From Tubulanus polymorphus (lineage: Eukaryota; Animalia; Nemertea), in the NCBI RefSeq assembly GCF_964204645.1, contig NC_134031.1:2852001-2916000 (forward strand): 64,000 nt of DNA. The letters are read 5' to 3'. This document shows positions 795-31,889 of this stretch, one piece after another. The notes under the pieces are model-generated. The model saw only the letters and a program-made list of their open reading frames with translations, was not told the DNA's origin and made no database searches. Made by a program: the position numbers and the translations under genes. Numbering within the stretch: position 1 is the first letter of the stretch; every line of letters starts with the position of its first letter.

Positions 795-3700
795 TATATC
801 CATGTACGTGTACTTTATTGGAATAAATGTGGATTGTGATCAGTGTGAGATTTTTATTCTTATGTACATGGTTTGGGAATTTTCACATTGTCCTTTGGTT
901 TTGGGGCCGATTGCATTCGGTAAGCATTTATTTTAGAAAATGAAGAAGCGCATAACACGAACAGTTTGAGGGGTCCTTGGAGCTCGGCTACATGTAGTCC
1001 CATTGATCGTCGGTGTGTAATGATAATGATTTCAATCTATTCTCGGGATCGTTATGCCAGTTTGTGAAGGAAAAATAAACGCACACCAAGCATAATTATG
1101 AAATATCGTTTATTGCAACAAGACTGACCATCAATAGTGAATAATAAAATATACACGACAGGTACATAGTTTATCATGGCAACTGGTGGTCAATATGGCC
1201 GAATATACTTGAGGCAAAAAAACGAGTCAACATATTACAATAAACTCTTAAATATAGAGAGCAAAACAGATCTATAGTTCCCAAACATTAACAAAATGAA
1301 TTATTCACTGGTTCGTAAAAATGTACATGATCCAAGTTAAATCGTGGATAAGATTATTTCATAGCTCCGAATAACTATTGTTTCCTTTCATAAATACATG
1401 TCAGAAATACAACAATTCCTATGATAAACTTCGGACTACATGTAATTCAAAATGTGTGCAATTTAAACTATGTAACAGCAGAGTGCAGATGGATTTTCTG
1501 ATATCCCAGATTCCATTAGGTTTAAAAGATTGAGGATAGGACTATACGGTTATGTACGTCGGCGCAGAAAAGAAATATCATTGTAATCTTCGGTATATTC
1601 AATGGTTATAGGCTACCTTAATTTTTTTCTGGATCAGATCTTATTGACAAACGAAGGGTAATCATTTATCGGATATACTGAGGTTGTAAAGATAAGCTTG
1701 ACTAGTCAAATTAAGACTGGGAAAATTTCCATTTACTGCTTTCATGGATGTATTTTATATTCTAACGTCCGTGAATTCATAAATGCGCGGGAAACAGTGA
1801 CAAAATTAACAATTAAACAGGTGACTAGTGAATACCTCAGTGACTAAAGAATAACGAACACATATATATCTAGTGAACAGCTTTTCGTAAATGCTTGCAA
1901 GTAGTAAAGATACCGATAACGTATAGTACACGTAACGTACATATACTGTATATGCAATTTAACCCGGGTATATTATTATTATTATTATACATGTACGATG
2001 GAAAAAATATTGAAAACTATTTTCGCGACAGTTGGAGAAAACGAATGCATACGAGTTTTAAGCACGGGACGGATATACATGTATAGTATCACAAAGTTTG
2101 GCGATGTTTATATAGTTTCATGGGTGTTACTGAAGCGATGCTGGCCCCCAGTCCAGCGAAAGATAGCTTCACATAGTTCGGTACCGTTGGTCCCCATTCA
2201 GTGCATTGCTTCTCAACGTTAGGCGTAACTAGTCTCACTAGTTACCGAAGGATGGCAAAGCGGGTAGCACAGGCCCCACCCAGTCCAACCATGGACTCTT
2301 CGTTTTAGACCTCAAGGTCCAACGAAGGATGGCTTTGGAAAATCCAAACAGATAATTCACTAATTCTCTAGGTATTGAGTACCCATTGAAAGATTTGGAA
2401 TGGTAAAATATCGACCAATTTTGTTTAGAGAACTGCGGTTTTAATACATGTATACTTATAAGTGGCAGCAGCTAAATTCAAACATGGTTTTAGTAATTCT
2501 TTCTCGATATTTCTCTCCTGGAAAAATGACTAGGACCGATAAATATATATATATATATATATATTAAATCGTATAAGAAAAATATACAACAATTCTAACA
2601 ATATCGATTGCTTGCAGTAAATGAATCATCGAGAAAAACTGAGTTTGATAAATACTGCGTATTATATATATGTGTATATAAAACCTTATCATTCACGTAG
2701 ATATACAAGTCTTATTGTAAGGACAGAGTTCCTATAATTCGTATTTCGAGATCAAATTATGATATCAACCGGTTTTATGGATTGGTTTTTAATAGATAAG
2801 AATTATAGGACACAGGACGTCTAGACATACACGCAAGAACACTGAAAATAAAGTCGTCTGCTTAATGTATAGACTTCGTATATGTTTACACAGATTTCCG
2901 AGGTCGTTCAGGTACCCCAACCATTAACCTGAGTGACCGACTAGACCCAGGAGATTGATTTTAATTCCCCATGATAAGCTTGACACGATCTAGACCGCTC
3001 TATTCTTTACACATTACCGATCATTTTGGCTGAAATTTCGGTTCCTTGTCGGTTTCACTAGCTACGACACCAACCACCCCGTAGCAAATAATGAAATGAC
3101 TGATCGTCTTCCTGAACATCGACAATGAACTTAATTTTGGCTTTTGGTAATTCAAAATTTTGGCGGAAACTGAGTTTGGCAGATAATTGACGGTCGACAT
3201 GTAGGGCCTAGTCTATTTCACAGTTAACTTGGCAACAAACAACAATTCTGAATCGGGTTTGAGTTAAATCTATCTCACTTGAATACAATTATTTACACGA
3301 ATTCTGATATATCATTGACAATGGTACATTTTTAGAAATTGGAAAGTACAAACTTTACAAAGACATTCAAATCACGTAGATAAACACATGCATTTACATT
3401 CAAACGTAGGAGTCAATTCTGCAGCTGTTAGTTAAGAATTCACTGTTTACAAAAAATATTCAATCATCATTCAGTTTAAACGTAAATACAATGCTCGTTA
3501 CACGTATTTGAACATGTATACTTGAAATTCGAACTGAAAATAACCTCACAACTGCGGAACTCTTACATAGAAACCGATAGTCTGTCCTAGACGATCTCAC
3601 AGACGAATCAAGTTTCCTATTTGGGATGATAAAAAGCTGACTGGAAGAAGAAAATTACTTTTTATAAACCCTTCAACCGCGAGTTACAAAATGTTGTCGG

Positions 3701-3959
3701 AATCTACGGGTTTTTAGACTGCGAATAATTATGATGATGAACGTGTGTTTTAATTTACAAATGAACGATGAAAATAATAATGAGTCACCAGGTTTACGCA
3801 GATCGGCAGAAAAGTACAAACCAGACGACCCGGTTCAAAAGTTCCGACACTCAAGATTCTTAAATTCGACTCTTAAGAGAGTTAACTTATTGAAATGGAC
3901 TCAGTTGTGTGATTTGCCCACGGAAATGAACCACAGTCGAACTCGCTTAAGTTGTCATA

Positions 3960-4245
3960 GGGTAGAACCTCGTTATAACAATTATGGATATAGCGATTTA
4001 TCGGTTATTACAAACCTAGGTCCGGTTTTATAGACTGGTATTACCTTTAACCCGGGGGCTAACTCAGTTGAATATGAATTGAGTTAGCCCCAGGATTAAA
4101 GGTAATATCCGACTATAGAACCAGCCCCTAGAATTTTGTCCCGAAATATCACAATTTCAGTTAATCCATACTGGATATAACGAACTATCAGGTAAAACAA
4201 ATAGTTTTTTAGTCCCCTGAAGTTCGTTGTAACGAGGTTCCGCTG
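3960..4245. mobile_element. Second copy of the TA-flanked MITE, carrying a nested palindromic MITE (4020-4128, TAG duplication)
   Basis: Ends GGTAGAACCTCGTTATAAC...GTTGTAACGAGGTTCCGCTG. Aligning to 645-794 shows an insertion at CCTAG^AAT; the insert is a near-perfect hairpin. Confidence 0.7.
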
Positions 4246-4591
4246 TAGTTGGGAAGATTATTATGATTTCGACTTATCCAAATTCCGACGTACACTTATA
4301 GTCGATTGAATTGAAAATAAAAATTAAGACTCATAAATCAGCCATGTGACGACTTTAAAGCAAGTTTTGCTGTAATATCAAATGTAGTGTCTTTACAAAA
4401 ACTGTTGAACTGGGGCCTGGAGCCCGTTCTAGAGTCATGGCTTTGTCTTAAGACATCAACTTAGTATTATAGTCGATTTAACAACTTCAGATTTAAGACC
4501 ACTTTGGTAAGTCTTGACTGGAACAGGCCCCTGGGTCGTTGTTTAGCTGCTCGGATGACTGTTGTATAATATACGGTGTAGAAGGCTTGTT

Positions 4592-6241
4592 TTATTTAAC
4601 GACTGCTAGCGATGATTTCGCGTCGGCGACGAGAAGTTCCATGCTGTCGGTGTCTCGACGTTTGAACGCTTCCGCGATCACTCGAGCCGCGTCGCGATGT
4701 TCGAGGTTCTTCAACGATTTACCGTTGACCTCCAGAAGAACGTGGCCGACTTTCAATCCGCCGGACTCGTGCGCCGATCCGCCGGGCTACAAGAGAAAAA
4801 TAGATTACTCGGTTTAAAATGAAATCTCGGTAATCGCGATATCGTTTAACTAAACACTACCATTTTCACTTCATGTTTTACATCCAATATTTACGTCCAA
4901 AGTAAATCTACCTCCAAAAATATTACACCAAAGATAACGTTCCAAAATTGTTGTGCTTTGAAATTTTATTTTAATTTTTGAATATCGACAAATTTTGAAT
5001 TACAATTTTTTTTATAAAATCTCCTCACTCGACGCTACGATTTAAATCTCAAAAACCTGTCCAAGGTGTACCTTTAACCATAAGAAGATAAGTATGTCGA
5101 GAGAAGATGAAAGAAACTGAAAACAAGATGTACGTAGAACAACCGAGGAACATCGTGGGGACACAATACGTAACATTAAAGGAAAGCTATAACGCCCCAG
5201 AGAACACGAAAAGCTCTTCCCAGTAAAAACACATCATCAATAAAAGGAGGTCATTCATTTGAAACGATTGATCATGGATTGATCATGGATTGATCATGGA
5301 TTGATCATGGATTGATCATGGATGCAGGAATGTTATACTTGAATGGTGGGTTTTGCCATCCCCTCCTAAATTCATGATCCACTCTGTTTTTGCCTCATAA
5401 ATGAATGACCTCGAGTTAGGAATGACTTTCGAAGGAATCTTTTCCAGAAGGGGTCGACATGAACCATTCACCAAAACGAAGCAGCCTGTTGTCACCTGAA
5501 CACTATACGTATACCGGCACCGCAGTTTATTAGCGTGCGAATATATACCTCGATTTCGACCACTTTAGGAATGGGCTCGCGAGATTTAGCACCTCCGGTT
5601 ATCGCGATGCCCAACGTCGTTCGACATTTTTTAATGATAACTTTCTGCGAAATAAATATATATTTCATAATTCAAAGAAGAACAGAAATCAACTTTTTTC
5701 GGCGCAGTGGAAAGTAATGATTGATATAAATAGAGTTGCTGAGAGATGCGAATGTCTGAATCGGAGATGCATAGAAGAACGTACATAGAGGAGGAGGTCC
5801 CAAATGCTTTTACTAATAGGCAACAACTGACTAATATCAAGAGGAACTAAGCAATATAATGTTTCATGGACCTTGATGATAATTTCTAACGTCATGAGAA
5901 ATAATCAGGGTCTGAGATTCTGACTTTCCATATCAGACTTCGCGTACGAACAATCAGCAACTCTGGATTCAGTTTTTTATATAATATACCGAGTCTTGTC
6001 AGAACAAGCCAGACAGATATACTACTAGAGAATAGAGAATGCGCCCGTGGCGTCTGCGCGAGTTTAATGTTACCTGTATGTTGATAATTCTGGGAAGCGG
6101 TTGACGAGTGTTAGCTCCACCTTCGATCGCGATTCCCAGCGTCGGCTTAGTTTTATACACGTTGACGATGCTACCCTCGTCCGTCTGACAGCTATCATCC
6201 ACCGTGTTTAATGGTTGCTGCAATAATCATTGTTAGTAATG

Positions 6242-6280
<39 letters not shown>

Positions 6281-9200
6281 GTAATAGTAATAGATTTCAT
6301 TATATAGTGCAGATTTAGTAAGATAATCGCTGCACTTCACCTTCACAATAAAAAACAGTATAGAGAAAATGTTAAAATTACCAATCAGGCATTATGAAAT
6401 ATTCTAAAAGTAGGTTTGGCTAAAAAGATATGTCTTAAGATAACGTTTGAAAATATGAATGGATGTTCTCTTAGAGATTATGGCAGTTTGTTCTAGAGGA
6501 TTGGACTAAAAAAATATTTTGCTAACAATCAATCAATTAGCTCAGACTTGATCCCAATGAAGTTTAATGGCTTGTACAGTGTTGATTCAGTACTATCAGG
6601 ATTGAAACATATTTTACCTGTGACGCCTGTTGTTTTTTCTCCTCTTCAGGAATAATAGGATTGAAATTTGGCTGAAAATAGAGAACGAAATGTTACATAA
6701 AGCATAGTAATACTATCTTAACTTACGAGACAATGTTCATAATGTAAGGGGCGGCAAAACACATTATTAAATCAGACAATAAATCCAAACTAAATTTGGA
6801 AAAAAAATAACGTCTGCGTTTAACCCATCCCTGTGCTAGGTAACTTCAGATTCTAATGCGCTCAATAAAACTGACTCAGTTCTTAATGATTAACGAATCC
6901 ATTGATGACAATCCCAGTTTTGATAACTTAATTCAGATAAATTTCAATCGAAAAGATTTAACACTATATATACAACACTAGCAACAAATAAACGAGTTGA
7001 ACAACACTTATTCTGATTCTATTCGGAGAGATAAGATACGGCGCCGCTTTCTCTGAGAGTCTAACATTTCAGAATTATTAAAAATGACAGAATCGAGGAC
7101 AGAAACAACTCAAGTGCTCATATGGAATATTCATCGGAAAGACACAGAAATAGAGACAGATTTCCAATAAAAGTCTGAGAGGTTTTGTTTTTGCTTTATG
7201 AGTGTTCGATTGCGCTGAATAACTTCATCATCTGCGTAGAGAAATATTGCGTAATATGAATCATGACCACGTGTTGATTCAGATTGTAGATTCTTACAGA
7301 TCAGAGAATCCATAATTCCCTGACATTTCCCTGATTTGTCCTGACCTTTGACCAAAAATCCCTCCGATTAAATTTGAAAATATCCTCAGTGGGGACTGTT
7401 TCTATTCAAGAAGTTCCTTGTGCTACTCGTCACCAGCAAGAACAACAAAACTACAAAATTCAATTTCCCTGACTTTTTCTTGATTCTCAAGAAACTGATT
7501 CCCTGATTTTCCTACACAGGTAAAAAATAAAATCTGAAATTCCATGAATTCCCCTGATCTGTAAGAACCCTGGACACAAGACGATGAAAAGTGATTTTCA
7601 CAAGAATTCTAGAGCGACACGTTTGTGCATATTTACACCAAATACTCTGACGGGAGACAAACCTACATCGGTCTCACGGATAACCGATATTTCGCCGTCG
7701 GGGTACACCAGGGGGCGTGGTATTCGAAACGGAGTGTTCGATAAAACGCTATCCATCGCCTCGGCGGAAGAGCTATGAACGATGAGGAAATAAAATAGAA
7801 ATTTTACCCGAAAACCAAAAAAAAGGTGATCTAAAACACAACAATTTGAATTTACATAAACGATCTTCAAAAAAAAATCGCACTCTAGTGAAAAAGTTTG
7901 AAATAAATTCTTTTCATGAAATCGCTACCAAACATACGTGTTTGACATGCTGGTACCCTAACGAAAATTTTACAAGAAAAAATTTCGTAAATTTCAAAAT
8001 TCAACTGAAAATTTCATCACCAATAAGATAACTGCTATTATGTTCCTAGAAATTTCGAGTCTAAATGTTTTGAAAAATATTGCAATGAAAATATTCCGAG
8101 TAAACTTCGAGGTTAACAACTGAAAACGAATGTCAAATATTCAACATAGACAAAATGAATAAAAGTAAAAAAAACGCACAATTAGGAAACTGTACAAACT
8201 ATGAACACACAGAGTCGACAAATCCTCTTATATCTCTGTCTCTCGTATGATTTGAAGTGTTTGACATCAATTGCCGATGATAATACGCTGCAAGTTTTAT
8301 AGGTTACAGCAACTGATGAGAGAGGGTGGAGTACCATGTTGCTAGGCAACGTATGTAAGTTAATGGATGCTTCGATTGCATTCTCTAACGTAGATCAGTA
8401 GAGCTATTCGCGCGACTAATGCAAGGCTCGATTTATTTCATTTGTAGAAAGTATCCTTCATTTTCGGTTTGAAATTATGTTTCTAATCGAGGAAACGCGG
8501 GAAACAACTGAATCAAACATCTTTTAATTGTGAAACCAGAAATTTCTTTTATCAGAGTGCCGCCACTTTCTGCCCATTTACAAATTCCCATGATTTTTCC
8601 ATGTTACAACAAAAATTTCCCTGAGTGAATCAGAGGAATTTGTAGGTTTAAAATATTACTATTTATTCAATTTTTATGAATCCTGTATTACTGAAGAGAT
8701 AAGTGGTCGATAACGTTATCTCTGAAAAATTCCCGGTTAAATTCCCTGAATTTTCCCTGATTTTTTAGGTTTTCTAATTGCCAGAGTTTTCCAGGTTTTC
8801 TAGGTCAGTGATCAACCTGTCTATCGTGTCAAGATATTTTCATTCCAATTATCGGTATCCCAACAAGAAATCGACAACCCTCAGGATACAGAAATTACGC
8901 CAAAATTGAGTTATGATACAGAAAACTCACTCAGCTAAGCGCGTTCATGTACATGCATTCTCAATTCAATTACCAGGGTAGTAACTAATTAGTAACAAAT
9001 ATAGTATAGTTAATAATTAACAAATGGGTTTAATTTACCATAATTGATATTGGATATTTGATGATAACTGAGTGGATCGTCAATAGCGCTGGGAATACAA
9101 CAACTTAAAAGTTTCATTAGCATAATTGCAAACGATGAAATGGAAACAGACTTGACGAGGGAAGAACCTGGTTATAGTAAGAATGGTTAAGTTGAAAGGA

Positions 9201-20454: not shown

Positions 20455-21222
20455 ATTATCATTCTGAGCGTTGGATGAAAATGTCCTGGCATTCTTTAAG
20501 CGGCCGTCCTAAATACTTATACACCTAAAATAATAAGAAAACTTCTTTTAGTTTCAGCAGGCAAAGCTCATAACCTGGCTGTCTACAATAGAACTAGTTC
20601 TCTGAATCCCGCATCATAGCTTAAGACTTATTATCCTGGTTTTTATATAGGCCTACCAATCCTATGGCGTGGTTCGTGAAAATACTGGTTATTTAAATCT
20701 GGTCATTATTGTCTAATGTCTATTTCACCTTTGCTCGGTTAAAAAATCAATGCGTTAGCTCAACTGCCCATCTGTACTGGTCCTTTTTAGACGGAACCTA
20801 TTTAGGTACGTACTAATACTAAGACTGAGGAGCCAGCGTCCAGGGAGGCCACCCGATGTCCTCTCAAAAGCATTGTTGAAATAAACATCAGTCGTTAGTA
20901 CTAAAAGTACCATATAAGATCATCTAGCTCATCTTGAATTCAAATAACCTTGGATTAAAGCAACTGAAAATATAGGATCGCTAAAAATCCAATCAGGTCA
21001 GCGGTTACATCGTTTTCTTTCGGTACTTAGTACAATCGAGAGAAATGTCAAGTTGAGTTGTTCTCAGTTTGAGACCCGATTCACTCGTATCTCAATGGTT
21101 TTAAATCGTGATCCTAAATATATCGGATAGAAAATAACACGAATCTTACACTCACTCGTAGAAACAGTTCGAATAGGTGAATTCCGGGTCGTAAAAACGA
21201 TTCCACAAATAATGCTGTCATT

Positions 21223-21266
21223 GCAAAAGGTTGAAAGCCTGTTTTGGTCGATGGCTAGTGACGTCA
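21223..21266 (+). repeat. Left TIR of the MULE, ending in CRE palindrome TGACGTCA
   Basis: Reverse complement of 30914-30957 with one mismatch. Confidence 0.95.
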
Positions 21267-22892
21267 TCAAGATCGCCTTTTTGTTACTCCCACAGCTAAA
21301 CAACTCACTTTTAACGGTTAACCGCTGAATTTGAATTTGCTGTCAAGTGTATTCTTGCTGGCTGTCGATTAAAAGATTGTGAATCATGTTTTCCGAACGT
21401 GTTAAGCTTGTCTCCGGACCAGTTGGTGGGAATATTGGTTTGAAAAAAGAGGTAGATTGCAAGATTATAAAAAACTCACTGGGTAACACTGGTGAACGCC
21501 GCGAGCATCGTGCACGGTGGTGCAGGCGAGGCGTCGCGACCGCGCGGCGGCAGGGCTTTTTAATTTTGGCTTTTGCCAGTTTTGGAGTCTTGTTATTGCC
21601 ACCACGGCCACGTTACCACCACACTCACATTGTCGCTAGGCCTACTGTACTGCCACTACTTTACTTGCTACTTACTCGGCTAAATTAATTTGTCTTCATC
21701 CACGCTTACTTCCCCCCTCCCCCCCCCCATGTTAACAAGTAATTTCTGCCAACCGAACCACCAGTCGCAGTAGCCGTAGGCAGTATACTATAGTGCAGTA
21801 GTGGGTACCCAGTGGCATGCCATTGCCATGCCACTGGGTATAGGCCTATGTTGCCCGTACACAGTCACCACCTAGTACTAGGCCTTAAATATTCCAACAA
21901 CCATTCCAAATCCAGCAACAAAAAATAAACAATAAATTTTAAGGCCTCGAAACAGAAGAATGGTAGTTCCCTGTATTCAGAGTCAATGAAAATGTATTTC
22001 TTGTTGCAGATAGATAGCCTAACCAATTTCAGGATAAGTACTTTTCATTCCTTTATTTATATACGTAGCCTAACTGTTTAATCCTGGCCCTGGCCACTGA
22101 GGGTGTATGCATTAGGTCTGGTCCCAGTTTCACTGAGCTAGTTAGCCAACAATTAAGCTGAGAAATTTTGTTAAGTGGCAATTCAGGGGCAGATCAGGAG
22201 AGTATACAGGGGTGTACACCCCTTAAAACTTTTAAGTTGCACTGAAATTTAAAGGGAAAATTAAAAATATCAACAAGTATTTTTAAAAAGCTTATATTCC
22301 AAAACATGTTCTCTGTAGGCCTACTTCCAAAATATAGGTATTATGTTTTCTGATGATCTGGTGCCCTTTTGATTTTTAATTATATATGATACTGATACCT
22401 ATGCCCTATTTTGGGCTGCACCCCTCCCTGAATCAGTCTGCCTGCAATTAAGAGGATGTTTATAGATAATTTGATTTAGAGGAATCTTTTAATTTAGTGC
22501 CTGATGTTAGGCCTTCCACAGCCTGGTAGAGGTGGTTTAGGTGAACAAGTTAGTCTTTACACTGCAGGACTTTTAGGTGAAGGTGAAACTGGCCCTTGTT
22601 TATGCATAGGCTACTGTGTGTGCACGCTTATCTTTATGCTTATTCAATTAGAATACCCATGTAGCTACCAAATAAGCACCGCTTCAGAGGATTTTAGAAA
22701 TTTTCACTTCAATAACACTGTGTTCTATTTTTGGGCACTAGCTACTATTATGCACAATTTTTTCAATCAATTCTATCACATTGATATACATATATGTGTC
22801 ACTTCTTTTGCATATAGTAGGGTCTTACCAGTGTGCTCTCTCACACCTCCCTGTGATATTGGCCTGAGACTGACAAATAATCTTTTTTGTAG

Positions 22893-25773
22893 CGTATTGG
22901 TCTCGTAGCAGACAGCATTTTAAAGTATGCTGGGCTAGATGGTGTAGGCTTATTTGAATGGACAAGGATCGTGTGCCCCGGAGGAACCATTGAAACATTG
23001 ATGGAAGGTAATTTCTCGGTTCAGTACTGATTTATATTGTTCATTTTCATTGGGTTACTGATTAGTTGTATATTACAGAATTGAAAAAGGTGAAGATGCT
23101 GAATGTGGAACAACTAATCGTCCATGTTGGAACAAATAATATGACGCGTGATGTCCCGCTTGAGATTGTTCTGCGAAGACACGTTGAATTAATTCGATTG
23201 TTGCTCTATAAATGTACTGGGACCATCATTGTACCAGCTCTTTTTCCTCGATGTGATGAGTAAGTATCAAGAATAGATTTTTCTTGAAGTACTATATTTA
23301 TGATCGATGTAATGATTTTTAAATTTCTTTCTTTTTTAAAGTTTCGATGCTGACACAAAGATATTTCATTACAATGAAATGCTGCACCGCGAATGCTTTA
23401 CACTTGGTGTAAAGTTCGTTGATTTTCACTTCTCAAGAGATCTCCTTTCACCGTAAGTAATCGTTTAATTTTAATAAGCCCAGTAGGTTATGTGCATTTT
23501 TTCGCGATTTAAACTAACTTGTTTTTTTCTAAATTTTGTGATCTAGGACTGACTTGTTACACCCCAGCCGTAAGGGAAATCAGTTCATAAATAACAGGAT
23601 AATGGAACTACTGCTATTGAAAAATGAAGATGAAATGTACGTAGAATTGCATTATTTTATCCAATTACCAGGTATGCAAACTACATAAATTTTATGATTG
23701 TACTGGAAATAATGAATGATTCTTAATCAGGTGCCCTCAATACTTTCCATATGAGATTGAAAAGATGCAAAGAAGTAGAGCAGTCCATCGACGAAAGGTA
23801 ATCATTTAGCATTGATATCCTAGAAAATGAATGATTTGCAATTAGTTTTTATAACTTGAATACGAAACCACTTTATTCAAAATCCTTGCATTGAATTAAT
23901 GAATCATATTGATAGCTGATAGCAAAAAACAAATTGAAGGATGATCAAGCAAGAGCATGGGATGATTCAACAATAGTGGTAAAGTTGTTTTCCTAAGTGA
24001 TTTGTACGTGATTTATCTTTATAAAGTTAGATATATTTTAACAGTTTTTTGTATCCTTCAATCCAGTATAGCAGTTTTGACGTTGCACATCATACGAGGA
24101 AACAATTCTGTTGTGAAGATCAAAGAGCCTTTTTCACATTCGACCAGGTACATATCATCTCAAGAACTTATGATTTAATATTAGTTTGGTCACTTTTATT
24201 TCACAATTACCTAAAGGCTGTGCATGCACAAATCTGTCTTTTTTTCCAGTACATGACTAAAATTGATGTGGCTGGTGTTGCTATTTGTTTAAAGCCTAAA
24301 TTATTTACTCCTTTTTATCAGACTAAGAACGTGAGTAATATGTTTCTCGAAATGAAATTATAGAAATTCATTGGTATTGGTATGATTTATGCTGTAAAGC
24401 TTTGTTTTTATATTCAGGGATGCTACAATAGAAGTTGTCACAATACTAAAAGATTTAACAGAAAAAGGAAGTCAGTGGAACATGTAAGTTTGATGCCCTT
24501 TCTGCGAGACGCGGGTTCATTTTTGTTATTTTTGCTTAGATGTTGAAGCAAAAACAGATTAATGTGCTCTTCCACATTAGGTTATTCATCCACAGACGGA
24601 TCCTGCTGACTCGACATGTTTTTGCGGAGTTGAATTCACCAATTGGAAAGATCTTCTAGACCATGTTAGTTTAAACCATACTGAAATGTAAGTACAACAT
24701 AATTCAATTATTTTAGTACCTACAAATCTAAATGACTTAATGCAAATGACTCAGAGATACCCATGTTTTATGTTAGGCCTATATGGGTAATTTCATACTC
24801 TATCTATTGATATGTCTAAAAAAAGTGAGTTGATAATGTGTATTTCAGGCGGACAATGGAGGAAGAAGGAAAGGACGCGGCTTGTGACAATTTCTCGGAA
24901 GGAACGATAGAGGAAGCAGAAAAGATGCAGGAAGATAGTTCGAAAGAAAGGATAGAAAGATTAAAGATGCAGGAAGATAGCTGGATGGAAAACAAAAAAC
25001 AGCTAAGTATCACAGGTGGTGGAGGTATCGAACCAATCATAATTGATGATAGTGATGAGAATGATTCTGATGATGAACATGTATGTAGAAGAAATTTTAG
25101 TTACAATCCAACAGAAATGTGCCTCAATGACTATCAGTTTTTGAAAATTCCTCCTGTTATGCCATCAAAGGTCACGTCATTCAGAATTTGTGACATGTCT
25201 AATTCATGTCATTTGGCTGATGATGCCCCCACTATGCCCCACAAAAATCAGTTGGAGGACATAAAAGCACAGATGCAGTCAAGGATTGTCCGTGACCCTT
25301 CCATTAATATCCATGTGAGACTCGATACAGGCTGCTATTCTATTGATCAGATTAATAGGTTTCTTTTCTTACATTATGCTAAAACCAAACAACAAGATCT
25401 TTTTGCCATGAATCTTTGGGTAAATAGTAAGCCTTTAAGCCCCACTGATTCAGTCGATTGGGAACAGATTCAAGCATTTTCAAATATGCTCTTTTCCTTA
25501 AAACCCTCTCAACAATTTCCAGTTGGTAATAATAATAGCGTATCTGTATCAGAACTTCAGACGATGACTAATCAAAAATGGTTTGAAGGATCTGTGTTAA
25601 ATGCTTTTGCATCTATGATAAATGATCCAATACACCATGTAAAGACGAAAAATGTAATCATCCATCTGAATTCTATATATTTAATGATGGCAATGGTTTT
25701 TTCAGAATCAAGCCATGTTCATCAACATCTAGATTTTGTCCTTTTGTACAACATGATAAAGATGCAAGTCTAA
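22893..25773 (+). CDS. Transposon-borne spliced ORF, 5' part: SGNH/GDSL hydrolase, C2H2 finger, acidic linker, start of Ulp1/C48-like protease. Exons 22893-23007, 23079-23259, 23342-23452, 23547-23636, 23731-23797, 23916-23978, 24067-24147, 24250-24330, 24418-24483, 24581-24687, 24849-(25625/25773). Tentative upstream exons from ATG 21386
   Basis: Ten consecutive GT-AG introns keep one stop-free frame. Motifs: LVADSI (block I Ser), CPGGTI (block II Gly), VHVGTNN (block III Asn), TDLLHP (block V DxxH); CFCGVEF...LLDHVSLNH; SVSELQTMTNQKWFEGSVLNAF (Ulp1-like L..L....WL....IN). Confidence 0.78.
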
Positions 25774-28043
25774 AGCAAGGAGCATCTGACAATAATCTTA
25801 AATCAGTACTATGTAATTTTCATGTCCTGCAGTGTATTCGTCGCTTCATGAATGAAAATCAAGAACTTCGCTTATTTTGCAAGCCTCTAGAAACTGGTTT
25901 CAAATGCATTATGAGATCATGGGATGCTTCCTCTAGAACTGATATAGCCAATTCATTTATTAGTTTTATTGAGAATGATATTTCTTTGGACCTTATGTCG
26001 CAAGATACAAAAACATTATTTATTGATTACCTAAAGAAGAATTGGTTTAATTCCCAAATTTGGTCTGATGCATTCAATGCTGAATCAATTTATCAGTCAG
26101 ACCAATCTAACAGAAATAACCCTTTGCTATTAACTGATAATATTACTGAGCGCAAATTCAAACAAATAGATGATGTCTACTTAAGTGGACACCTAAATAA
26201 ACTGATATCATCTTTTGTACGATTACTGTTTGAAAATGTTTTTAATGATGAGATCAAAGCGACAAATATGAACAATCTCCAATTTAAGCAACTTGACCAA
26301 CGAGTTAAGAATATACGTCACCTTGAAAAGATAGAAAAGTGTTGCAAAAGAGCCTTTGATTTATTACAGAATAATGAGATTTTAAAATATGATGAAGAAA
26401 CTAATTGGTTTGTTGTGAAGAGTTCTTCACGAAAGAACTTAAATAGGTTAGAAGATAATGATAATTTTTTCAATGGTGATACTCAATATACATTCAATCA
26501 GCTTGATGTTTTAGAAGAAAGATTCCCCGATAAAGTATCAATATCCGAGGAACATTCATATGACATTTCAAAAAAATGCCGAAGGTACATAGGAAATTTA
26601 GATTCAATATCCAGTCGTATCTTATTCAATTACGTTATTACAATCGTTCCTGAAAATTGTCTTTCATACGTAGATGGTAATTGCCATTTAATCAATTTGA
26701 AACTAGGTATATGTACTTGTGAAGCTTTTATAATGATTGGACAACCATATTTTTGCAAACATCTTTTTGCCTGTTTTGCCCAAAAAAACAATATAACCAC
26801 AACGAAGGCTTTAATTGATGCATATAAATTCCACATTGTGGAGCCTCTGCCAACTTACAATTTTACTCGACAAAATAGTTCTGTTTCATCTACCCTCATT
26901 GATAAGTTAAAAGATCATTCCCACATTGCTAGCTCGAATGATATCAATGCTGCTCGGAAAGGGCACATTCTAAGTATTTTACATAATGAAAGCCACTGTG
27001 GAATTAAGTTAATAAGCGGACGACCTGCCAAACGACAACCTCACAATATGGCTCATAGGCGTGCTGAGGGTCCAATCAAGGACAATCAGGTTGCCATAAA
27101 CCTTCCTGAACTTGAAGTGATAGACCCTTACTGCCCTAAGGTTACAATGCCTAAAGATGCTGAGAATGCAAGACACGGAGGGCGAAAGATAATTAGACCT
27201 GCTAACAGAGGTGTATCCTTTTCTGCTATGGTTGAAAATGCTGCTATCAAACTAGGTAAACAAGCTAAAATATCAGAAATTGAAACCATAGACTCCACTG
27301 ATCCAGATCCTGGCAATGATATCGAATTTTCAGCAGATATTTTAAGTCAGAATAAATCATCCTTACCGAAAAAATCAAAAGATACCAAACCAAAAGATAT
27401 TAAGTCAATACCAGTTGTTAAAAATGACTCGAAGTCTGTTTTATTTGAAAAAAGTATTGTCTGTTCCTTTTGTATTAAAGACAAAATAAATCCTCCATAT
27501 CTTTGTTCATGTCGCAGGGAACTAGATAGGCACATATCCACTTCTCATTCATCTTTGAAACCTATCTCATGTGCTATTTGTTGGGCAGATGGGGTTATTA
27601 ATTCATATGCAAGTGAAACATTCCTTCAAAAGCACATTCGTATTGAACATAATCATCATAAGAAAAAATCTATTGTAATCGATTATAATAATAGAGATGA
27701 TTATCTCAACAGTTCTCCTATTACAGAAATCAATAATTCCAAATCTGAAAAAGAATTAGAAATTCTTATAGATCAACCTGGAAATGCAGGCCTCCAAAAC
27801 CTAGCAAAATTGAAACTAGATAATCTTTTGCCATCAAAAGTTGAAAAAACCCCTTCTCAGTTAGTTGCTGAAACCTGCCCTGTCTGCCACAAAAACTGCA
27901 ATGCTAATCCTAAGAAAAAGTCCACATTCTCAATTGAATGTGATAATTGCCATAGATGGTATCATTGGAAATGTGCTCCAATCAATGAGGCTCCTCCTGA
28001 ACATATCAGGTGGTTTTGTTTTCATTGTGACCCGATTTCCTAA
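25626..28043 (+). CDS. MULE transposase C-terminal part: DDE core (2nd D, CxxH, E), SWIM, 2x C2H2, PHD; N-terminus missing/out of frame with the upstream ORF
   Basis: The frame of ORF 25848-28043 is open back to 25626 and adds VQHDKDASLKQGA...SVLCNFHVLQ. Further motifs: YLKKNWF, LTDNITERKFKQI (E), SWIM CTCEAF...FCKHLFAC, and C-terminal PHD CPVC...ECDNCHRWYHWKC...WFCFHC. Confidence 0.85.
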   Translation, partial: SNTPCKDEKCNHPSEFYIFNDGNGFFRIKPCSSTSRFCPFVQHDKDASLKQGASDNNLKSVLCNFHVLQCIRRFMNENQELRLFCKPLETGFKCIMRSWDASSRTDIANSFISFIENDISLDLMSQDTKTLFIDYLKKNWFNSQIWSDAFNAESIYQSDQSNRNNPLLLTDNITERKFKQIDDVYLSGHLNKLISSFVRLLFENVFNDEIKATNMNNLQFKQLDQRVKNIRHLEKIEKCCKRAFDLLQNNEILKYDEETNWFVVKSSSRKNLNRLEDNDNFFNGDTQYTFNQLDVLEERFPDKVSISEEHSYDISKKCRRYIGNLDSISSRILFNYVITIVPENCLSYVDGNCHLINLKLGICTCEAFIMIGQPYFCKHLFACFAQKNNITTTKALIDAYKFHIVEPLPTYNFTRQNSSVSSTLIDKLKDHSHIASSNDINAARKGHILSILHNESHCGIKLISGRPAKRQPHNMAHRRAEGPIKDNQVAINLPELEVIDPYCPKVTMPKDAENARHGGRKIIRPANRGVSFSAMVENAAIKLGKQAKISEIETIDSTDPDPGNDIEFSADILSQNKSSLPKKSKDTKPKDIKSIPVVKNDSKSVLFEKSIVCSFCIKDKINPPYLCSCRRELDRHISTSHSSLKPISCAICWADGVINSYASETFLQKHIRIEHNHHKKKSIVIDYNNRDDYLNSSPITEINNSKSEKELEILIDQPGNAGLQNLAKLKLDNLLPSKVEKTPSQLVAETCPVCHKNCNANPKKKSTFSIECDNCHRWYHWKCAPINEAPPEHIRWFCFHCDPIS

Positions 28044-28819
28044 ATAGTTTGTATTGAATATTATTGATCGGGTTTCGAATGAATCCCTGACGTTAGAAAT
28101 ATTTTCATTTCCCATGGTGAACGTAGAAGCCTATAATGACCGTCACTTAGTCACCTATATATTTACTCGATTATATATAAGGTTAAGAAGCGATGTATAT
28201 GCACTGGTGTTTATAGTGCTCTATTTCAGGTTTTTTCTTTCAGGAAAATATATTTTGTGAATAGATTACCGCTTGATTTTTTATGTTACAGGTTACTGCA
28301 AAATCATCAGTTATTGTGATGCGTGCCGATGTCTCTGGATGATTCTGACCATGTCTAGAACTTCAACATCCTTGACTTATCATCAATTGGCAGCAGTATA
28401 CATACATGCATGTTCAGAGAGTGTATGAAGAGAGTGTATGGACACATCAACCTCGGTTCAAGGCTGTCCCTGATTAAATTGTATAATCCATATATAATAT
28501 ATATAGATTGGTCCCATTTTAACTTACTCAACTGCTTGAATGTCTTGTTTGTTATTCGTAAATTTTCACTTATTCATTGATTGTTTCTGTAGAATTTTAT
28601 ATGTGATATATAAACGTGGAAACCAGGGCCCATTGCACTATGAAAGACACTTGACATTTTTTTGGGACAGATCTTTCTATATGTTTATGTCCTCGAGGCA
28701 TCTGAACTTAAGAAAATTCCCTTTGAAAACTGGAAATGACATAATGAAATAAGTTGTGGAATGTTTAAATTCGACAAAATGAATGTATTTTGCATTCCTA
28801 AGGCCCTATATATTTACTG

Positions 28820-29880
28820 CAGTTAGTCCTGTATGTCTTTTTTATCGCAATTTACTGTGGTTTATTCCTGTTTGTCCTGTATGTCTTTGTGATCGCGATC
28901 GCAATTCATTGGTTGCATTGTTTACTGTTAATTCTGTATGTCTATCGCAATTAAGTTAGTCCTGTATGTCCTGTATGTCTTAGTTAATCGCAATTCATTG
29001 GTTGAATTGTCTACTGTTGGTCCTGTATGTCCTGTATGTCTTAGTTAATCGCAATTCATTGATTGAATTGTCTACTGTTAGTCCTGTATGTCTATCGCAA
29101 TTAAGTTAGTCCTGTATGTCCTGTATGTCTTAGTTAATCGCAATTCATTGGTTGAATTGTCTACTGTTAGTCCTGTATGTCTATCGCAATTAAGTTAGTC
29201 CTGTATGTCCTGTATGTCTTAGTTAATCGCAATTCATTGGTTGAATTGTCTACTGTTAGTCCTGTATATTCTGTATGTCTATCGCAATTAAGTTAGTCCT
29301 GTATGTCCTGTGGTTTAGTCCTGTATGTCTTAGTTAATCGCAATTCATCGGTTGAATTGTCTACTGTTAGTCCTGTATGTCCTGTGGTTTTATCCTGTAT
29401 GTCTTTGTGATCGCGATCGCAATTCATTGGTTGCACTGTTTACTGTTAGTCCTGTATGTCTATCGCAATTAAGTTAGTCCTGTATGTCCTGTATGTCTTA
29501 GTTAATCGCAATTCATTGGTTGTTGAATTGTCTACTGTTAGTCCTGTATGTCCTGTGGTTTAGTCCTGTATGTCTTAGTTAATCGCAATTCGTTGGTTGA
29601 ATTGTCTACTGTTAATCCTGTATGTCCTGTATGTCTATCGCAATTAAGTTAGTCCTGTTTGTCCTGTATGTCTTAGCTACGAGCAATTATCAAACTTGAT
29701 AATTGCCTTGTAGGTCTTAGTTAATCGCAATTCATTGGTTGCATTGTTTACTGTTAAAGCTGTATGTTCTGTATCTCTATCGCAATTTCATTGGTTGCAT
29801 TGTTTACTGTTAAAGCTGTATGTTCTGTATCTCTATCGCAATTTCATTGGTTGAATTGTTAACAGTCCTCTGTATGTACA
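28820..29880. repeat. Complex satellite inside the MULE (modules GTCCTGTAT, ATCGCAATT, CATTGGTTGAATTGTCTACTGTTA)
   Basis: Direct reading; variable-length higher-order units. Confidence 0.9.
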
Positions 29881-30010
29881 TGTAAAAATAAATAAGGTTC
29901 TGACAACAGGTTTGTAAAGTAATCAGCTATCTGTTTTGTCTATCGTTGCTTAAATTGTTAACTGTTGTTTTAGAGTTCTGTATGTCTTTGTCGATCATTT
30001 TGTCTGCACT

Positions 30011-30254
30011 CAGGGGCGGATCCAGCATTTTGAAGGGGGGGGGGGGGCAAATGAAAGCAACAACAGATGGCTGTAAGCCATTCCAGAGCAAGCACCGATA
30101 ACGCGAAGACCCTCCCTAAAAGATTTTTGGAAAAATAGATGCAAGCAGGTGCATTCTGAGCATTACTTAATAGAAAGATTTCATTCGGTTTTTACTCAGT
30201 AACGCATAGATTTGCGGCTACATCGGTAAAAATAGAGGGGTGGATCCGCCACTG
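30011..30254. mobile_element. Small non-autonomous TIR element (CAGGGGCGGATCCA...TGGATCCGCCACTG) nested in the MULE; related copies at ~15130-15378 and ~22184-22444
   Basis: 13/14-bp terminal inverted repeat; similar CAGGGGC(A/G)GAT starts occur elsewhere in the window. Confidence 0.6.
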
Positions 30255-30913
30255 AATAGCTATTGTTTTGTGTAGGATTGTATCTGTGAATTAAGTAAAG
30301 TTACTTACTCCAGTCTGATGTTATGACTTATTGCTCGTATTTTATTGTTTTAAGTGTGCGAATACTTTTCTTAGATTTATGGAGATCAGGATGACGAGGG
30401 TTCGATTTGAACCAACAAATAAACAAAAACATTCAAACCTCAAATTAATCCGTTTACTTGTCTTTATTTTTGGGGAACATTTTTTTACCTAGTTCAGATT
30501 TGATAACACAGTAGTCGCTTGTTCCAAAGCGATGTGCCGTTGAAGACAGACCTGAAGGTCTTTGCCGATAGCGATGCTATCCAGGATTTCAAAGGATGTG
30601 AAGAAGGTGCATCTTCGACAACCATAGTTTGCAGTTTTAACAATTTAAAACAATAATAGTTTCATTAAACAACTTAAAATTTAAAGATTTAGTGGACTTA
30701 CTGTTTAACCAGGGCAGGGATTTCTCGCAACCGTACATGATATATACATACACTAGCAGTAAATACAATGTACTTCTAACCCTTATAAAACTTAAACTAT
30801 TATTAGTTATTTTACAATTATTGAACGGCAACGTTGAAATGCGATGTGCGCTCAGAGCGGCCGTAGTGATTTTGGCGTATTGTGGGATTCGAACCGCTCG
30901 GAATTTGTACTAG

Positions 30914-30957
30914 TGACGTCACTCGCCATCGACCAAAACAGGCTTTCAACCTTTTGC
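30914..30957 (-). repeat. Right TIR of the MULE
   Basis: Reverse complement of 21223-21266 with one mismatch. Confidence 0.95.
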
Positions 30958-31889
30958 GCTGTCATTGGCAGCTGCAATAACTTCCGCGTTTATCCTGCTA
31001 ATTACCAAAATAACCTCACTTGCCAGTGGAAGTGTAAACTAACTATTATCGGTAAAATCACATCCTCGTTTGCCCGTTTGCCAGGGGTCCGGTATCACTC
31101 CCGAACTAGCTTTAGCGTAGTGGGTTCGAATCCCTTGACGGGTGAAGATGGTAAAATCATAGCGGACCTTAAGATTTATAGTGAAATATACGAAAAGCCG
31201 TGAAAATAATTTTAAATAAGAAGGTTTATAGATAAGACATTATAATATAATCTGTGTCGTGTCCCAGTACTTATGACTATTTCATTTCAACCGTGCAGTT
31301 TCAGTGGCCTAGGCTACTCGAAGGGACCAGCACAGATTTTTGATCCATGGAATTGAAGGAGAGCCAAAAAACCTTCTTTGAATGAGGTTGAATTAGAGAA
31401 AAACCAAGTTAAACAGTAATAATTGTGAAATCATTTGACCTATATGATGTCATTTTTCAGAACAGAAAACCTTGTCTTTCCATTTTCACTATAAAAACAT
31501 TTGCATCGTGAATTAATGAATGAAAGATTATTTAGATGTATTTTTTCATTTATTGGCACATATATTACATTGATCTCTTCTTTAAATCATAAAAATCATT
31601 TATTACTAGGCCTCCAATTCTAGGAAGCTATTATTACATGATATTATAACATATAATAGTTCAAGACTTATAAATAAATCATTCTTTGCATTTATAGTAA
31701 ACATAACATCAGTTTGGAATTCACAATTCCGAGGGCCATCCTTAGCTATCAGACTAAATCTCTTGATAATTGATATCAATTAGACATCAGCAGCTGATAA
31801 ACCCTCAATTTTGGATGCATTCAAAATCAACCGCAATCATCACAGTTTCTTAATTTCTATTATCCGTCTTCGGTAAGTAAACCGCTTTC

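Follow-up and report, generated by a model that had tools for sequence, protein, structure and literature searches.

A probable deletion derivative of a recently transposed, Rehavkus-like Mutator-superfamily transposon in the nemertean Tubulanus polymorphus, with SGNH esterase exons spliced to the transposase gene of its intact relatives

Among Mutator-like elements (MULEs), the Kaonashi/KI-MULEs of plants carry a Ulp1 domain. Ginger2 DNA transposons also carry Ulp1 (PMC2836005), and Rehavkus combines a 9-bp target-site duplication (TSD) with a PHD finger, a minisatellite before the 3' terminal inverted repeat (TIR), a length of 9.1-18.5 kb and TIRs of 26-412 bp (Dupeyron et al., 2019; PMC6446971, Table 1 and Table S1); its Repbase members are Rehavkus-1_HR, -1_TC, -3_TC and -2_NVi (PMC6446971). 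Transposon-borne SGNH esterases are described from the ORF1 protein (ORF1p; ORF, open reading frame) of CR1/L2/RTEX-type long interspersed elements (LINEs), as in ZfL2-1 (PDB 4C1B; Schneider et al., 2013, PMC3905857), GDSL esterases occur also in Terminons and in bdelloid long terminal repeat (LTR) elements (PMC6431247, PMC5408684), and one SGNH gene was captured by a Helitron in platyfish (PMC4021074). Here we describe the element at positions 21223-30957 of a 64,000-nucleotide stretch of Tubulanus polymorphus DNA (the window; NC_134031.1, positions 2,852,001 to 2,916,000), which a reading made from the letters without database searches (the sequence-only reading) had taken for a complete giant Mutator-like transposon whose single gene runs from an SGNH esterase to a PHD finger. 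Our analysis indicates instead, with a probability of about 0.85, that it is a non-autonomous copy, with an internal deletion, of a ~12-kb Mutator-superfamily element with Rehavkus-type hallmarks that recently transposed in T. polymorphus.

The 44-bp TIRs of the window copy, the left of which opens with GCAAAAGGTTGAAAGCC, differ by one mismatch and are flanked by a perfect 9-bp TSD (Table 1), as the sequence-only reading had stated. In the 268-Mb T. polymorphus assembly, the terminal 200 bp of the element occurred ~31 times (left end) and ~30 times (right end) at 93-100% identity. Since both 200-bp ends recur at ~30 genomic places, a chance origin of the TIRs and TSD is excluded. To check TSDs, 13 further copies were retrieved; 12 copies, including the window copy, had both ends. 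A perfect 9-bp TSD, different from all the others, was found in 10 of these 12 paired copies, and one further copy had a 9-bp duplication displaced by one extra base. No target-site consensus was found among the TSDs of the paired copies, and the G+C content of the insertion flanks was only slightly above the window mean. Copies ranged from 2.1 to 17 kb in length with a mode near 12 kb, and comparison with the 12-kb copies showed that the shorter ones are other internal deletions. A census based on open-frame lengths from a genome-wide search found the intact 1,918-codon exon ORF open at seven loci, in 12-kb copies, and the intact ORFs that were compared differed from one another at 5-7 positions per 5,754 nt. 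One of the intact copies is C2:2994277-3006373. Since the intact ORFs are near-identical and at least 30 copies exist, the family is young, has transposed very recently and is probably still mobile, which agrees with the recent mobility proposed earlier.

When the window copy was aligned with the 12-kb copies, the two were collinear save for one gap with its junction at 25625/25627 (Table 1; residues are numbered throughout on P0139, the 2,196-aa RefSeq protein XP_074643861 encoded by intact copies). The deletion sits exactly where the Ulp1-like start of the sequence-only reading (frame 24829-25770) meets its DDE core (frame 25626-28040), and contigs of three sequencing runs quit the window sequence at 25625 and rejoin it at 25627, carrying full-length sequence between. 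In the window copy, the frame entering from the SGNH exons reaches a stop at 25771. D1343, the first of the catalytic Asp residues, is missing, as are the His, Asp and Cys of the Ulp1-like domain and a GATA finger. The GATA finger had escaped the earlier reader because it lies within the deleted part. Since D1343 is absent and the frame is shifted, the window copy would be movable only in trans; it is a dead derivative with no coding gene. The single gene from SGNH to PHD is thus a property of the intact copies and not of the window copy.

To define this gene, four sequencing runs were compared over 21223-27222. Contigs of run X4 contained twelve GT-AG joints, corresponding to two leader introns and ten coding introns (Table 1), and the same joints were absent from the DNA-like runs X1 and X2. 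Element sequence was absent from run X5, the one run guessed to be RNA. Translation exon by exon was open throughout and reproduced P0139, which is the longest isoform; XP_074643861 and other isoforms come from at least three loci, and isoform X2 begins at a Met in exon 9. When the transposase core served as query against 1.8 billion representative proteins, a protein in the RefSeq isoform cluster matched it at 100% identity. Intact copies therefore hold one 12-exon gene, in which an intron-rich 5' module is spliced onto an intronless 5.75-kb exon, and both the ten short introns and the joining of SGNH exons to the transposase gene that had been read from the window are borne out. The domain order of P0139 is SGNH, a C2H2 finger (262-283), a Ulp1/SENP fold, Ser/Thr/Pro-rich repeats (790-930), a GATA-type finger (1118-1144; matches to GATA1/3 structures at E 7e-7 to ~1e-6), the MULE DDE/CxxH core, SWIM, two C2H2 fingers (2004-2066) and a PHD finger (2142-2192). 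One further X4 contig of 2,143 nt matches 21309-21924 after 1.5 kb of unrelated sequence, with a joint at 21309 that has no AG acceptor; it may be a chimeric or read-through transcript, or may stem from a copy with a different 5' end.

Residues 1-125 of P0139 matched Pfam Lipase_GDSL_2 (positions 65-177) with an E-value of 1.5e-7, the GTNN (20-23) and DLLH (102-105) motifs are conserved in the diverged Tubulanus families 2 and 4, and PF13472 is precomputed for a 175-aa RefSeq product, P0158. As a single sequence, the SGNH part reached only E 0.1-0.3 against the PDB, and in a search with a profile of the module the top-ranking solved structure was 4C1B, the esterase of a zebrafish LINE ORF1p (E 3e-4), ahead of 2hsj (a putative platelet-activating-factor entry) and the OSK domain of Oskar. 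Exon 2 by itself gave no Pfam match at E <= 10. It encodes RIGLVADS...CPGG, in frame with and immediately 5' of the P0139 initiator Met (ATG 23001). In the observed mRNA, exon 2 is preceded by TAG, the last 3 bases of exon 1b, with no upstream in-frame ATG, and all RefSeq products start at MEELKK or later. Since the annotated start is ATG 23001, past blocks I and II, the annotated protein lacks the Ser nucleophile and the oxyanion Gly. With its start thus placed within the SGNH domain, it does not demonstrate a working esterase in the active lineage. All four blocks of the sequence-only reading (ADS, CPGG, GTNN and DLLH) are therefore present in the DNA, the first two behind an in-frame TAG and before the annotated ATG.

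Comparison with diverged relatives in the same genome points to a different state in the ancestors. The large ORF of family 2 is 35-41% identical to that of the window family (family 1). A family-2 relic at C7:9.322-9.342 Mb has exons 2-6 and the C2H2 exon upstream of a Ulp1/GATA ORF, and a relative of family 2 at C1:19.77 Mb has matches to SGNH exons 2 and 3. In the still more distant family 4, SGNH exons with introns at matching positions lie at C4:9.937 Mb, and Ulp1 and core sequences at 9.951-9.954 Mb. When families 1 and 2 were compared over the four SGNH exons, nonsynonymous divergence (dN) was 0.23-0.36 and synonymous sites were saturated or close to it; exon 2 retained 61% amino-acid identity with a ratio of dN to synonymous divergence (dS) of ~0.2, and ADS, CPGG, GTNN and D-x-L-H were all kept. 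By these sequence comparisons, the SGNH module was complete and under selection as part of this gene in the ancestors of no fewer than four diverged Tubulanus lineages, and very probably it was a functional part of the ancestral gene.

Since position 23001 reads ATA in family 2, the ancestral start must lie upstream. No similarity was found between families 1 and 2 upstream of exon 2, and the ancestral first exon is therefore not traceable in family 2. However, a relic of family 1 at C3:14.584 Mb, ~5% diverged in exons and introns alike, has an exon 1b without the 4-bp GTTA and with AAG in place of the TAG of active copies, and its leader forms a single open frame, MLGLPQPGTGGLGEQVFMLQYFK|CIGLVADS, that runs from the first ATG through to exon 2. 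Read most simply, the lineage now expanding lost its leader to two changes, the 4-bp insertion and a nonsense mutation; the insertion would have disconnected the original start codon, and the annotated protein therefore begins past the Ser and Gly blocks. We lean slightly toward the view that the module is a decapitated remnant in the active family.

The strongest alternative is that the SGNH part is still a working esterase, with exon 2 reached either through a new splice donor at 22548/22549 (ATG 22504 plus 15 codons) or from a near-cognate, non-AUG start, giving a four-block enzyme fused to the transposase. The same GTTA insertion creates CAA|GTTAGT at 22548/22549, a possible GT.AGT donor in phase 0 with ATG 22504; exon 2 is free of stops and frameshifts in every copy checked; and exon 2 shows long-term purifying selection, whereas ATG 23001 is not conserved. 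However, the joint from this donor was not seen in the contigs, which cannot exclude a minor isoform; the sole observed joint into 22893 uses the donor at 22576/7 and brings in the in-frame TAG; and no RefSeq isoform of the cluster has the length of ~2,247 aa that this would give. Moreover, copies are 98-100% identical, and an intact exon 2 is accordingly a weak guide to present selection. Continued production of the full SGNH enzyme is therefore rather unlikely.

It is quite improbable that the SGNH exons represent a recent, functionless capture of a host gene fragment in the manner of a Pack-MULE, exonised by chance. MULEs are known to take up host gene fragments (PMC6431247), the module is intron-rich next to an intronless transposase exon, and it is missing from the homologues in other phyla. 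Against this, the module is present in all copies not deleted there, as a test of the other TIR-bearing copies showed; three more lineages share its intron positions at 27-64% protein identity; and dN is far under the saturated dS with all catalytic motifs kept. Pack-MULEs are non-autonomous and have no transposase of their own, and here seven or more transposase ORFs are intact. At E <= 0.01 the genome yielded no host gene that is a stand-alone paralogue of the module, and a whole-genome search with PF13472 did not detect the split SGNH exons of the element, even in its own copies. That search did return more than 50 intronless Lipase_GDSL_2 ORFs, in identical multi-copy sets (frames of 441, 506, 509 and 722 aa), which are most likely ORF1 esterases of CR1/L2/RTEX-type LINEs. 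Since such intronless, probably LINE-encoded esterase ORFs are abundant, the genome appears rich in transposon-borne esterases.

Outside Tubulanus, homologues were found in Patella caerulea (several loci), Oratosquilla oratoria, Scylla/Portunus, Priapulus caudatus and Nymphon striatum. They are 29-42% identical over the Ulp1-like region and the span from GATA to PHD, and in the Scylla protein the alignment reaches back to the N-terminal C2H2 finger. An SGNH domain was not seen in any of these protostome homologues, and neither SGNH-like exons within 10 kb nor, by BLAST, TIRs were found at the Patella caerulea homologue. A word-based search for homologous proteins, whose blanks mean little, returned Tubulanus and Patella only and found neither family 3 nor an SGNH-bearing giant homologue. 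Family 3 of T. polymorphus (C6:15725672-15728518, minus strand) keeps a 1,787-codon frame open at 37-52% identity to the window family and could be another autonomous element; the genome-search matches showed no SGNH exon in its vicinity. The C2H2-Ulp1-GATA-DDE-SWIM-C2H2-PHD architecture without SGNH is thus not unique to Tubulanus, and the SGNH exons appear from these searches to be known only from Tubulanus, in four diverged lineages. This is what became of the proposed search of related genomes for SGNH joined to MULE: the combination recurs within Tubulanus and is missing from the protostome homologues.

The SGNH ORF at C4:9.937 Mb was at one point considered part of a Polinton-like element, a protein-primed family-B DNA polymerase (PolB) adjoining it, and this was rejected because its intron positions and exon-6 motif match the MULE module and because Ulp1 and core matches follow on the same strand. 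The polymerase lies in C4:9934000-9941999 (positions 3839-7858), where a 453-aa ORF with U1/C2H2-like fingers accompanies an 870-aa protein-primed family-B DNA polymerase ORF (PF03175, E 4e-18). Both sit between the SGNH exons and the Ulp1/core remains of family 4, and are probably a nested Polinton/Maverick-like or other protein-primed PolB element.

For the region that the window copy has largely lost, a model of residues 480-770 was predicted with AlphaFold using nine homologues (predicted local distance difference test score, pLDDT, 79; predicted template-modelling score, pTM, 0.81). Its top Foldseek matches in the PDB were Ulp1, SENP2 and SENP1 (E 6e-9 to 1e-7, probability 1.00, template-modelling score, TM, by target 0.64-0.68). 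H607, D624 and G687 were invariant across 9 sequences, Q680 and C686 were present in most, with Cys686 kept in all rows but Scylla, and language-model features scored 0.94 to Peptidase_C48 clusters. By this model, intact copies encode a Ulp1/SENP-type cysteine-protease fold with His607, Asp624, Gln680 and Cys686.

The transposase core was compared with canonical PF10551-positive MULEs of the same genome. The family profile aligned with them by hhalign with a probability of 96.8% (E 2.7e-10, 201 columns), which puts D1343, D1435 and C1454xxH1457 in register with canonical MULEs, and E1566 is invariant in the family alignment. FNDGNG, tried as the site of the second Asp, was dropped when the alignment placed D1435 in VQHDK. 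A Cys/His-rich insert of ~35 residues lies between the first and second Asp. The predicted core model (pLDDT 84) had ESM Atlas neighbours that, as listed in ten rows (one per set of families) for the 30 nearest models, all carry MULE/PF10551 (TM 0.52-0.58), and core language-model features scored 0.96 to MULE. Sub-threshold matches to MULE and ZSWIM1-3 appeared in distant relatives only. The SWIM motif (CTC...CKH, 1754-1770) is kept in the family alignment. The PHD finger scored 24.2 bits in Pfam (cut-off 24) on the intact ORF and matched the TAF3 PHD at E 4.7e-7; its best solved relatives are the H3K4me3 readers TAF3, BPTF and PHF2, and it is also found in the homologues P0002, P0007 and P0017. 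The element thus belongs, on its TSD, profile alignment and predicted folds, to the Mutator superfamily, as had been supposed from the letters, and the CxxH, SWIM, C2H2 and PHD motifs and the Ulp1 module read there were all recovered.

Several points weigh against this account. Pfam MULE (PF10551) gave no match on the 1,918-aa ORF or on P0139 even at E <= 1; Pfam SWIM gave none on this protein at E <= 1, with a weak match (E 0.004) on the homologue P0007; and for residues ~500-720 there was no PDB sequence match and no PF02902 match at E <= 1 on P0139:480-820. Pfam searches of single ORFs and exons likewise returned no MULE, SWIM or C48 match, and these three assignments draw on profile-profile, fold and motif grounds. 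Of the Pfam matches that the sequence-only reading had expected along the exon chain, the PHD finger was above its cut-off and Lipase_GDSL_2 (32.5 bits) just below its curated cut-off of 32.9, and the SGNH assignment draws on P0139 residues and, separately, on exon 2 by itself. Run X4 is not on record as RNA, its contigs and the RefSeq models are the sole transcript basis of the gene model, and minor isoforms could go unseen in the contigs. One decayed copy gave the polarity of the exon-1b changes, with the C3 state taken as ancestral. Finally, the block around the first Asp is L-D-[AS]-T-G-S in Rehavkus (PMC6446971 supplement) and G-I-D-V-K-H-D here; given this difference, membership in Rehavkus is not claimed.

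The lack of a Pfam MULE match would also fit an element of another SWIM- or Ulp1-bearing superfamily with 8-9-bp TSDs (Zisupton/KDZ, hAT or P). The first PDB match of the core model in Foldseek was the hAT transposase Hermes (E 8e-4, TM 0.19), and Ulp1 domains are known in other DNA transposon superfamilies, e.g., Ginger2 (PMC2836005). However, the hhalign result with D, D and CxxH in register, the PF10551 carried by all listed Atlas neighbours, the MULE or ZSWIM1-3 character of the weak matches in distant relatives and the 9-bp TSD of 10 of 12 copies all speak for Mutator, and a further PDB match, the IS256-family transposase ISCth4, had a better TM than Hermes. The IS256 family is the prokaryotic kin of Mutator. 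A placement outside the Mutator superfamily is accordingly highly improbable. That the window copy is itself intact and autonomous, its gene reading through from the SGNH exons to PHD, can be dismissed: its TIRs and TSD are intact and every domain of the sequence-only reading is visible in plus-strand frames, but alignment to the 12-kb copies and the intact ORF refutes it, the copy being 2,543 bp short of seven intact copies, with halves in different frames, an upstream frame ending at 25771, and D1343, the protease triad and the GATA finger gone.

Table 1. Features of the window copy, in window coordinates.
Feature	Position	Strand	Basis or remark
Left TSD, GCTGTCATT	21214-21222	.	identical to 30958-30966
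Left TIR, 44 bp, inner end is the palindrome TGACGTCA	21223-21266	+	inverted-repeat search
5' subterminal G+C-rich region and first leader exon (ends 22037)	21267-22037	+	GT..AG joint 22037>22498 in X4 contigs; composition
Two leader introns	22038-22497, 22577-22892	+	X4 spliced contigs
Leader exon 1b	22498-22576	+	carries ATG 22504 and 4-bp GTTA; ends in TAG in frame with next exon
Exon 2: SGNH block I (ADS, Ser nucleophile) and block II (CPGG)	22893-23007	+	X4 joints; RefSeq start codon 23001
Exon 3: SGNH block III (GTNN)	23079-23259	+	X4 joints; Pfam Lipase_GDSL_2 on P0139
Exon 4: SGNH middle part	23342-23452	+	X4 joints, translation, Pfam, family-2 comparison
Exon 5: SGNH block V (DLLH, triad Asp/His)	23547-23636	+	X4 joints, translation, Pfam, family-2 comparison
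Exons 6-10: linker without assigned fold	23731-23797, 23916-23978, 24067-24147, 24250-24330, 24418-24483	+	X4 joints, translation, P0139/P0001
Exon 11: C2H2 zinc finger (CFCG...HVSLNH)	24581-24687	+	conserved in family 2; aligned in Scylla homologue
Ten coding introns	23008-23078, 23260-23341, 23453-23546, 23637-23730, 23798-23915, 23979-24066, 24148-24249, 24331-24417, 24484-24580, 24688-24848	+	X4 spliced contigs, RefSeq model
First part of large last exon: acidic region and first ~60 residues of Ulp1/SENP-like domain, truncated	24849-25625	+	100% identical to intact-ORF nt 1-797
Deletion junction, 1 filler base	25626	+	intact-ORF nt 798-3340 (2,543 bp; P0139 residues ~545-1391) gone; frameshift
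Remaining 3' transposase exon, other frame	25627-28043	+	ORF/motif reading, intact-copy comparison
Second Asp	25743-25763	+	within 25627-28043
CxxH	25809-25832	+	within 25627-28043
Catalytic Glu	26139-26159	+	within 25627-28043
SWIM motif	26712-26762	+	within 25627-28043
Two C2H2 fingers	27462-27650	+	within 25627-28043
PHD finger	27876-28028	+	within 25627-28043
Stop TAA	28041-28043	+	end of transposase exon
Minisatellite array, units ~56-89 bp	28898-29860	.	Tandem Repeats Finder; between ORF and 3' TIR
3' subterminal non-coding region	29861-30913	.	recurs at ~30 loci
Right TIR, 44 bp	30914-30957	-	inverted complement of left TIR, 1 mismatch
Right TSD, GCTGTCATT	30958-30966	.	perfect 9-bp match with left one

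Several features of the ends and of individual copies were recorded beside these. The minisatellite differs in length and unit number from copy to copy, and enrichment of GATA motifs was not found in the element termini or the minisatellite. The perfect palindrome TGACGTCA, a CRE/ATF-type site, stands at 21259-21266 and 30914-30921, the inner edge of both TIRs, and could be a promoter element or part of a transposase binding site. A C-rich tract (21704-21730) and a G13 tract (30035-30058) form a weak long-range inverted repeat, the tract lengths varying between copies. Three copies (C1:1591498-1603913, C5:22757431-22769770 and C8:10697912-10710557) have ~543 bp extra ~660 bp from the left end, and the 17.3-kb copy C2:19705419-19722669 probably has a nested insertion inside. 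Two older relics of family 1, C9:7400000-7409999 and C9:7492073-7492806, are ~97% identical, lie 85 kb apart and have the same internal structure, which suggests a segmental duplication containing a dead copy.

The family has the anatomy of a TIR element, with a 9-bp staggered cut, a MULE-type DDE core, intact transcribed master copies and deletion derivatives. From general knowledge of DDE transposases, the transposase would bind the 44-bp TIRs, or subterminal or minisatellite repeats, excise the element and reinsert it with a 9-bp staggered cut, and copies like that in the window would rely on transposase supplied in trans by at least seven intact copies. Judged from domain kinship, the GATA, C2H2 and SWIM fingers could provide DNA or protein contacts, the PHD, GATA and C2H2 fingers plausibly steering the transposase to DNA and active chromatin, and the TAF3-like PHD may tether it to H3K4me3 chromatin near promoters. 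MULEs show a promoter insertion bias, which such tethering would fit. The predicted Ulp1-like protease plausibly removes SUMO or a ubiquitin-like modifier from host or element proteins. The roles put forward in the sequence-only reading (anti-silencing, targeting or membrane-linked transfer) stay conjectural.

Our literature search, which covered 8.4 million papers, returned esterases of LINEs, Terminons and LTR elements and a single SGNH gene captured by a Helitron; a cut-and-paste transposase joined to an esterase module was not among the results, Repbase and Dfam lying outside the search. It found no paper on Tubulanus transposons either. The proposal that the combination is undescribed thus stands, within that literature, for SGNH in a cut-and-paste element, and not for the rest of the architecture, which occurs in other protostomes and shares the Rehavkus hallmarks. 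We tentatively raise a stronger idea, without favoring it: throughout the divergence of at least four nemertean lineages, an esterase of the LINE-ORF1p type would have been built into, and selected as, the N-terminal part of a cut-and-paste DDE transposase gene, which would make this the first class II TIR transposon known to have recruited one, and the active family may express it in full via the new splice donor. If so, the esterase would serve a step common to all mobile elements (membrane, nuclear-envelope or germ-line access, or horizontal passage) and not ribonucleoprotein (RNP) biology; LINEs, some LTR elements and the Penelope-like Terminons each acquired this accessory enzyme on their own. 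Previously, such esterases had been associated with retroelements. Here one was under selection for a long time as part of a DDE transposase gene, and in the expanding lineage it has apparently been truncated, which offers a natural experiment on whether mobility requires it. The family also adds a giant DNA transposon with recent activity to Nemertea, a phylum whose transposons have hardly been studied. Its seven or more intact copies and mini-elements down to 2.1 kb are parts for a transposition assay, and the protostome-wide family of 1,700-2,250-aa transposases that fuse SUMO-protease-like, GATA, MULE and H3K4me3-type PHD modules is suited to asking what Ulp1 and PHD do.

Compared with Pack-MULEs and the platyfish Helitron, the element is alike in being a DNA transposon that carries SGNH or host-like gene sequence with introns. 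However, Pack-MULEs are non-autonomous carriers of fragments, whereas here the module is old, stands in the transposase transcript and shows purifying selection. With the esterases of LINE ORF1p it shares a transposon-borne SGNH fold and the same pattern of Ser, Gly, Asn and Asp-His blocks, and Kapitonov and Jurka are said to have described in 2003 CR1-like ORF1 proteins that pair the esterase with a PHD finger. LINEs, however, are class I elements with an intronless ORF1 acting on RNPs, whereas the nemertean module has short introns, is fused to a class II DDE transposase and has probably had its N-terminus cut off in the active lineage. As in Kaonashi/KI-MULEs and Ginger2, a C48 Ulp1/SENP-like protease lies inside a DNA transposon; here it is fused with the transposase in one 5.75-kb exon, a fusion conserved across protostome phyla, in an animal lineage and with domestication not indicated.

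Closer likenesses are found within the Mutator superfamily. Canonical MULEs (MuDR, Phantom and the FAR1/FHY3 type, with PF10551 and SWIM) share with it an RNase-H-like DDE core in which CxxH stands after the second Asp and before the Glu, a SWIM-type motif further downstream, a 9-bp TSD and cut-and-paste anatomy. The element differs from them in being too diverged for PF10551, in its ~35-residue Cys/His insert between the first two Asp residues, in a GATA finger before the core where a WRKY, FLYWCH or FAR1 domain is usual, and in a protein 2-3 times longer. Rehavkus differs in that Nemertea are not among its listed hosts and that SGNH, C2H2, Ulp1 and GATA modules do not appear in the accessible part of its published descriptions. 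Yet the 9-bp TSD, the 44-bp TIR within the published range, the single PHD-bearing transposase gene, the minisatellite just before the 3' TIR, the very large size (~12 kb here) and the protostome hosts are all shared, and by these published structural hallmarks, as distinct from Repbase sequences, the element is Rehavkus-like within the Mutator superfamily.

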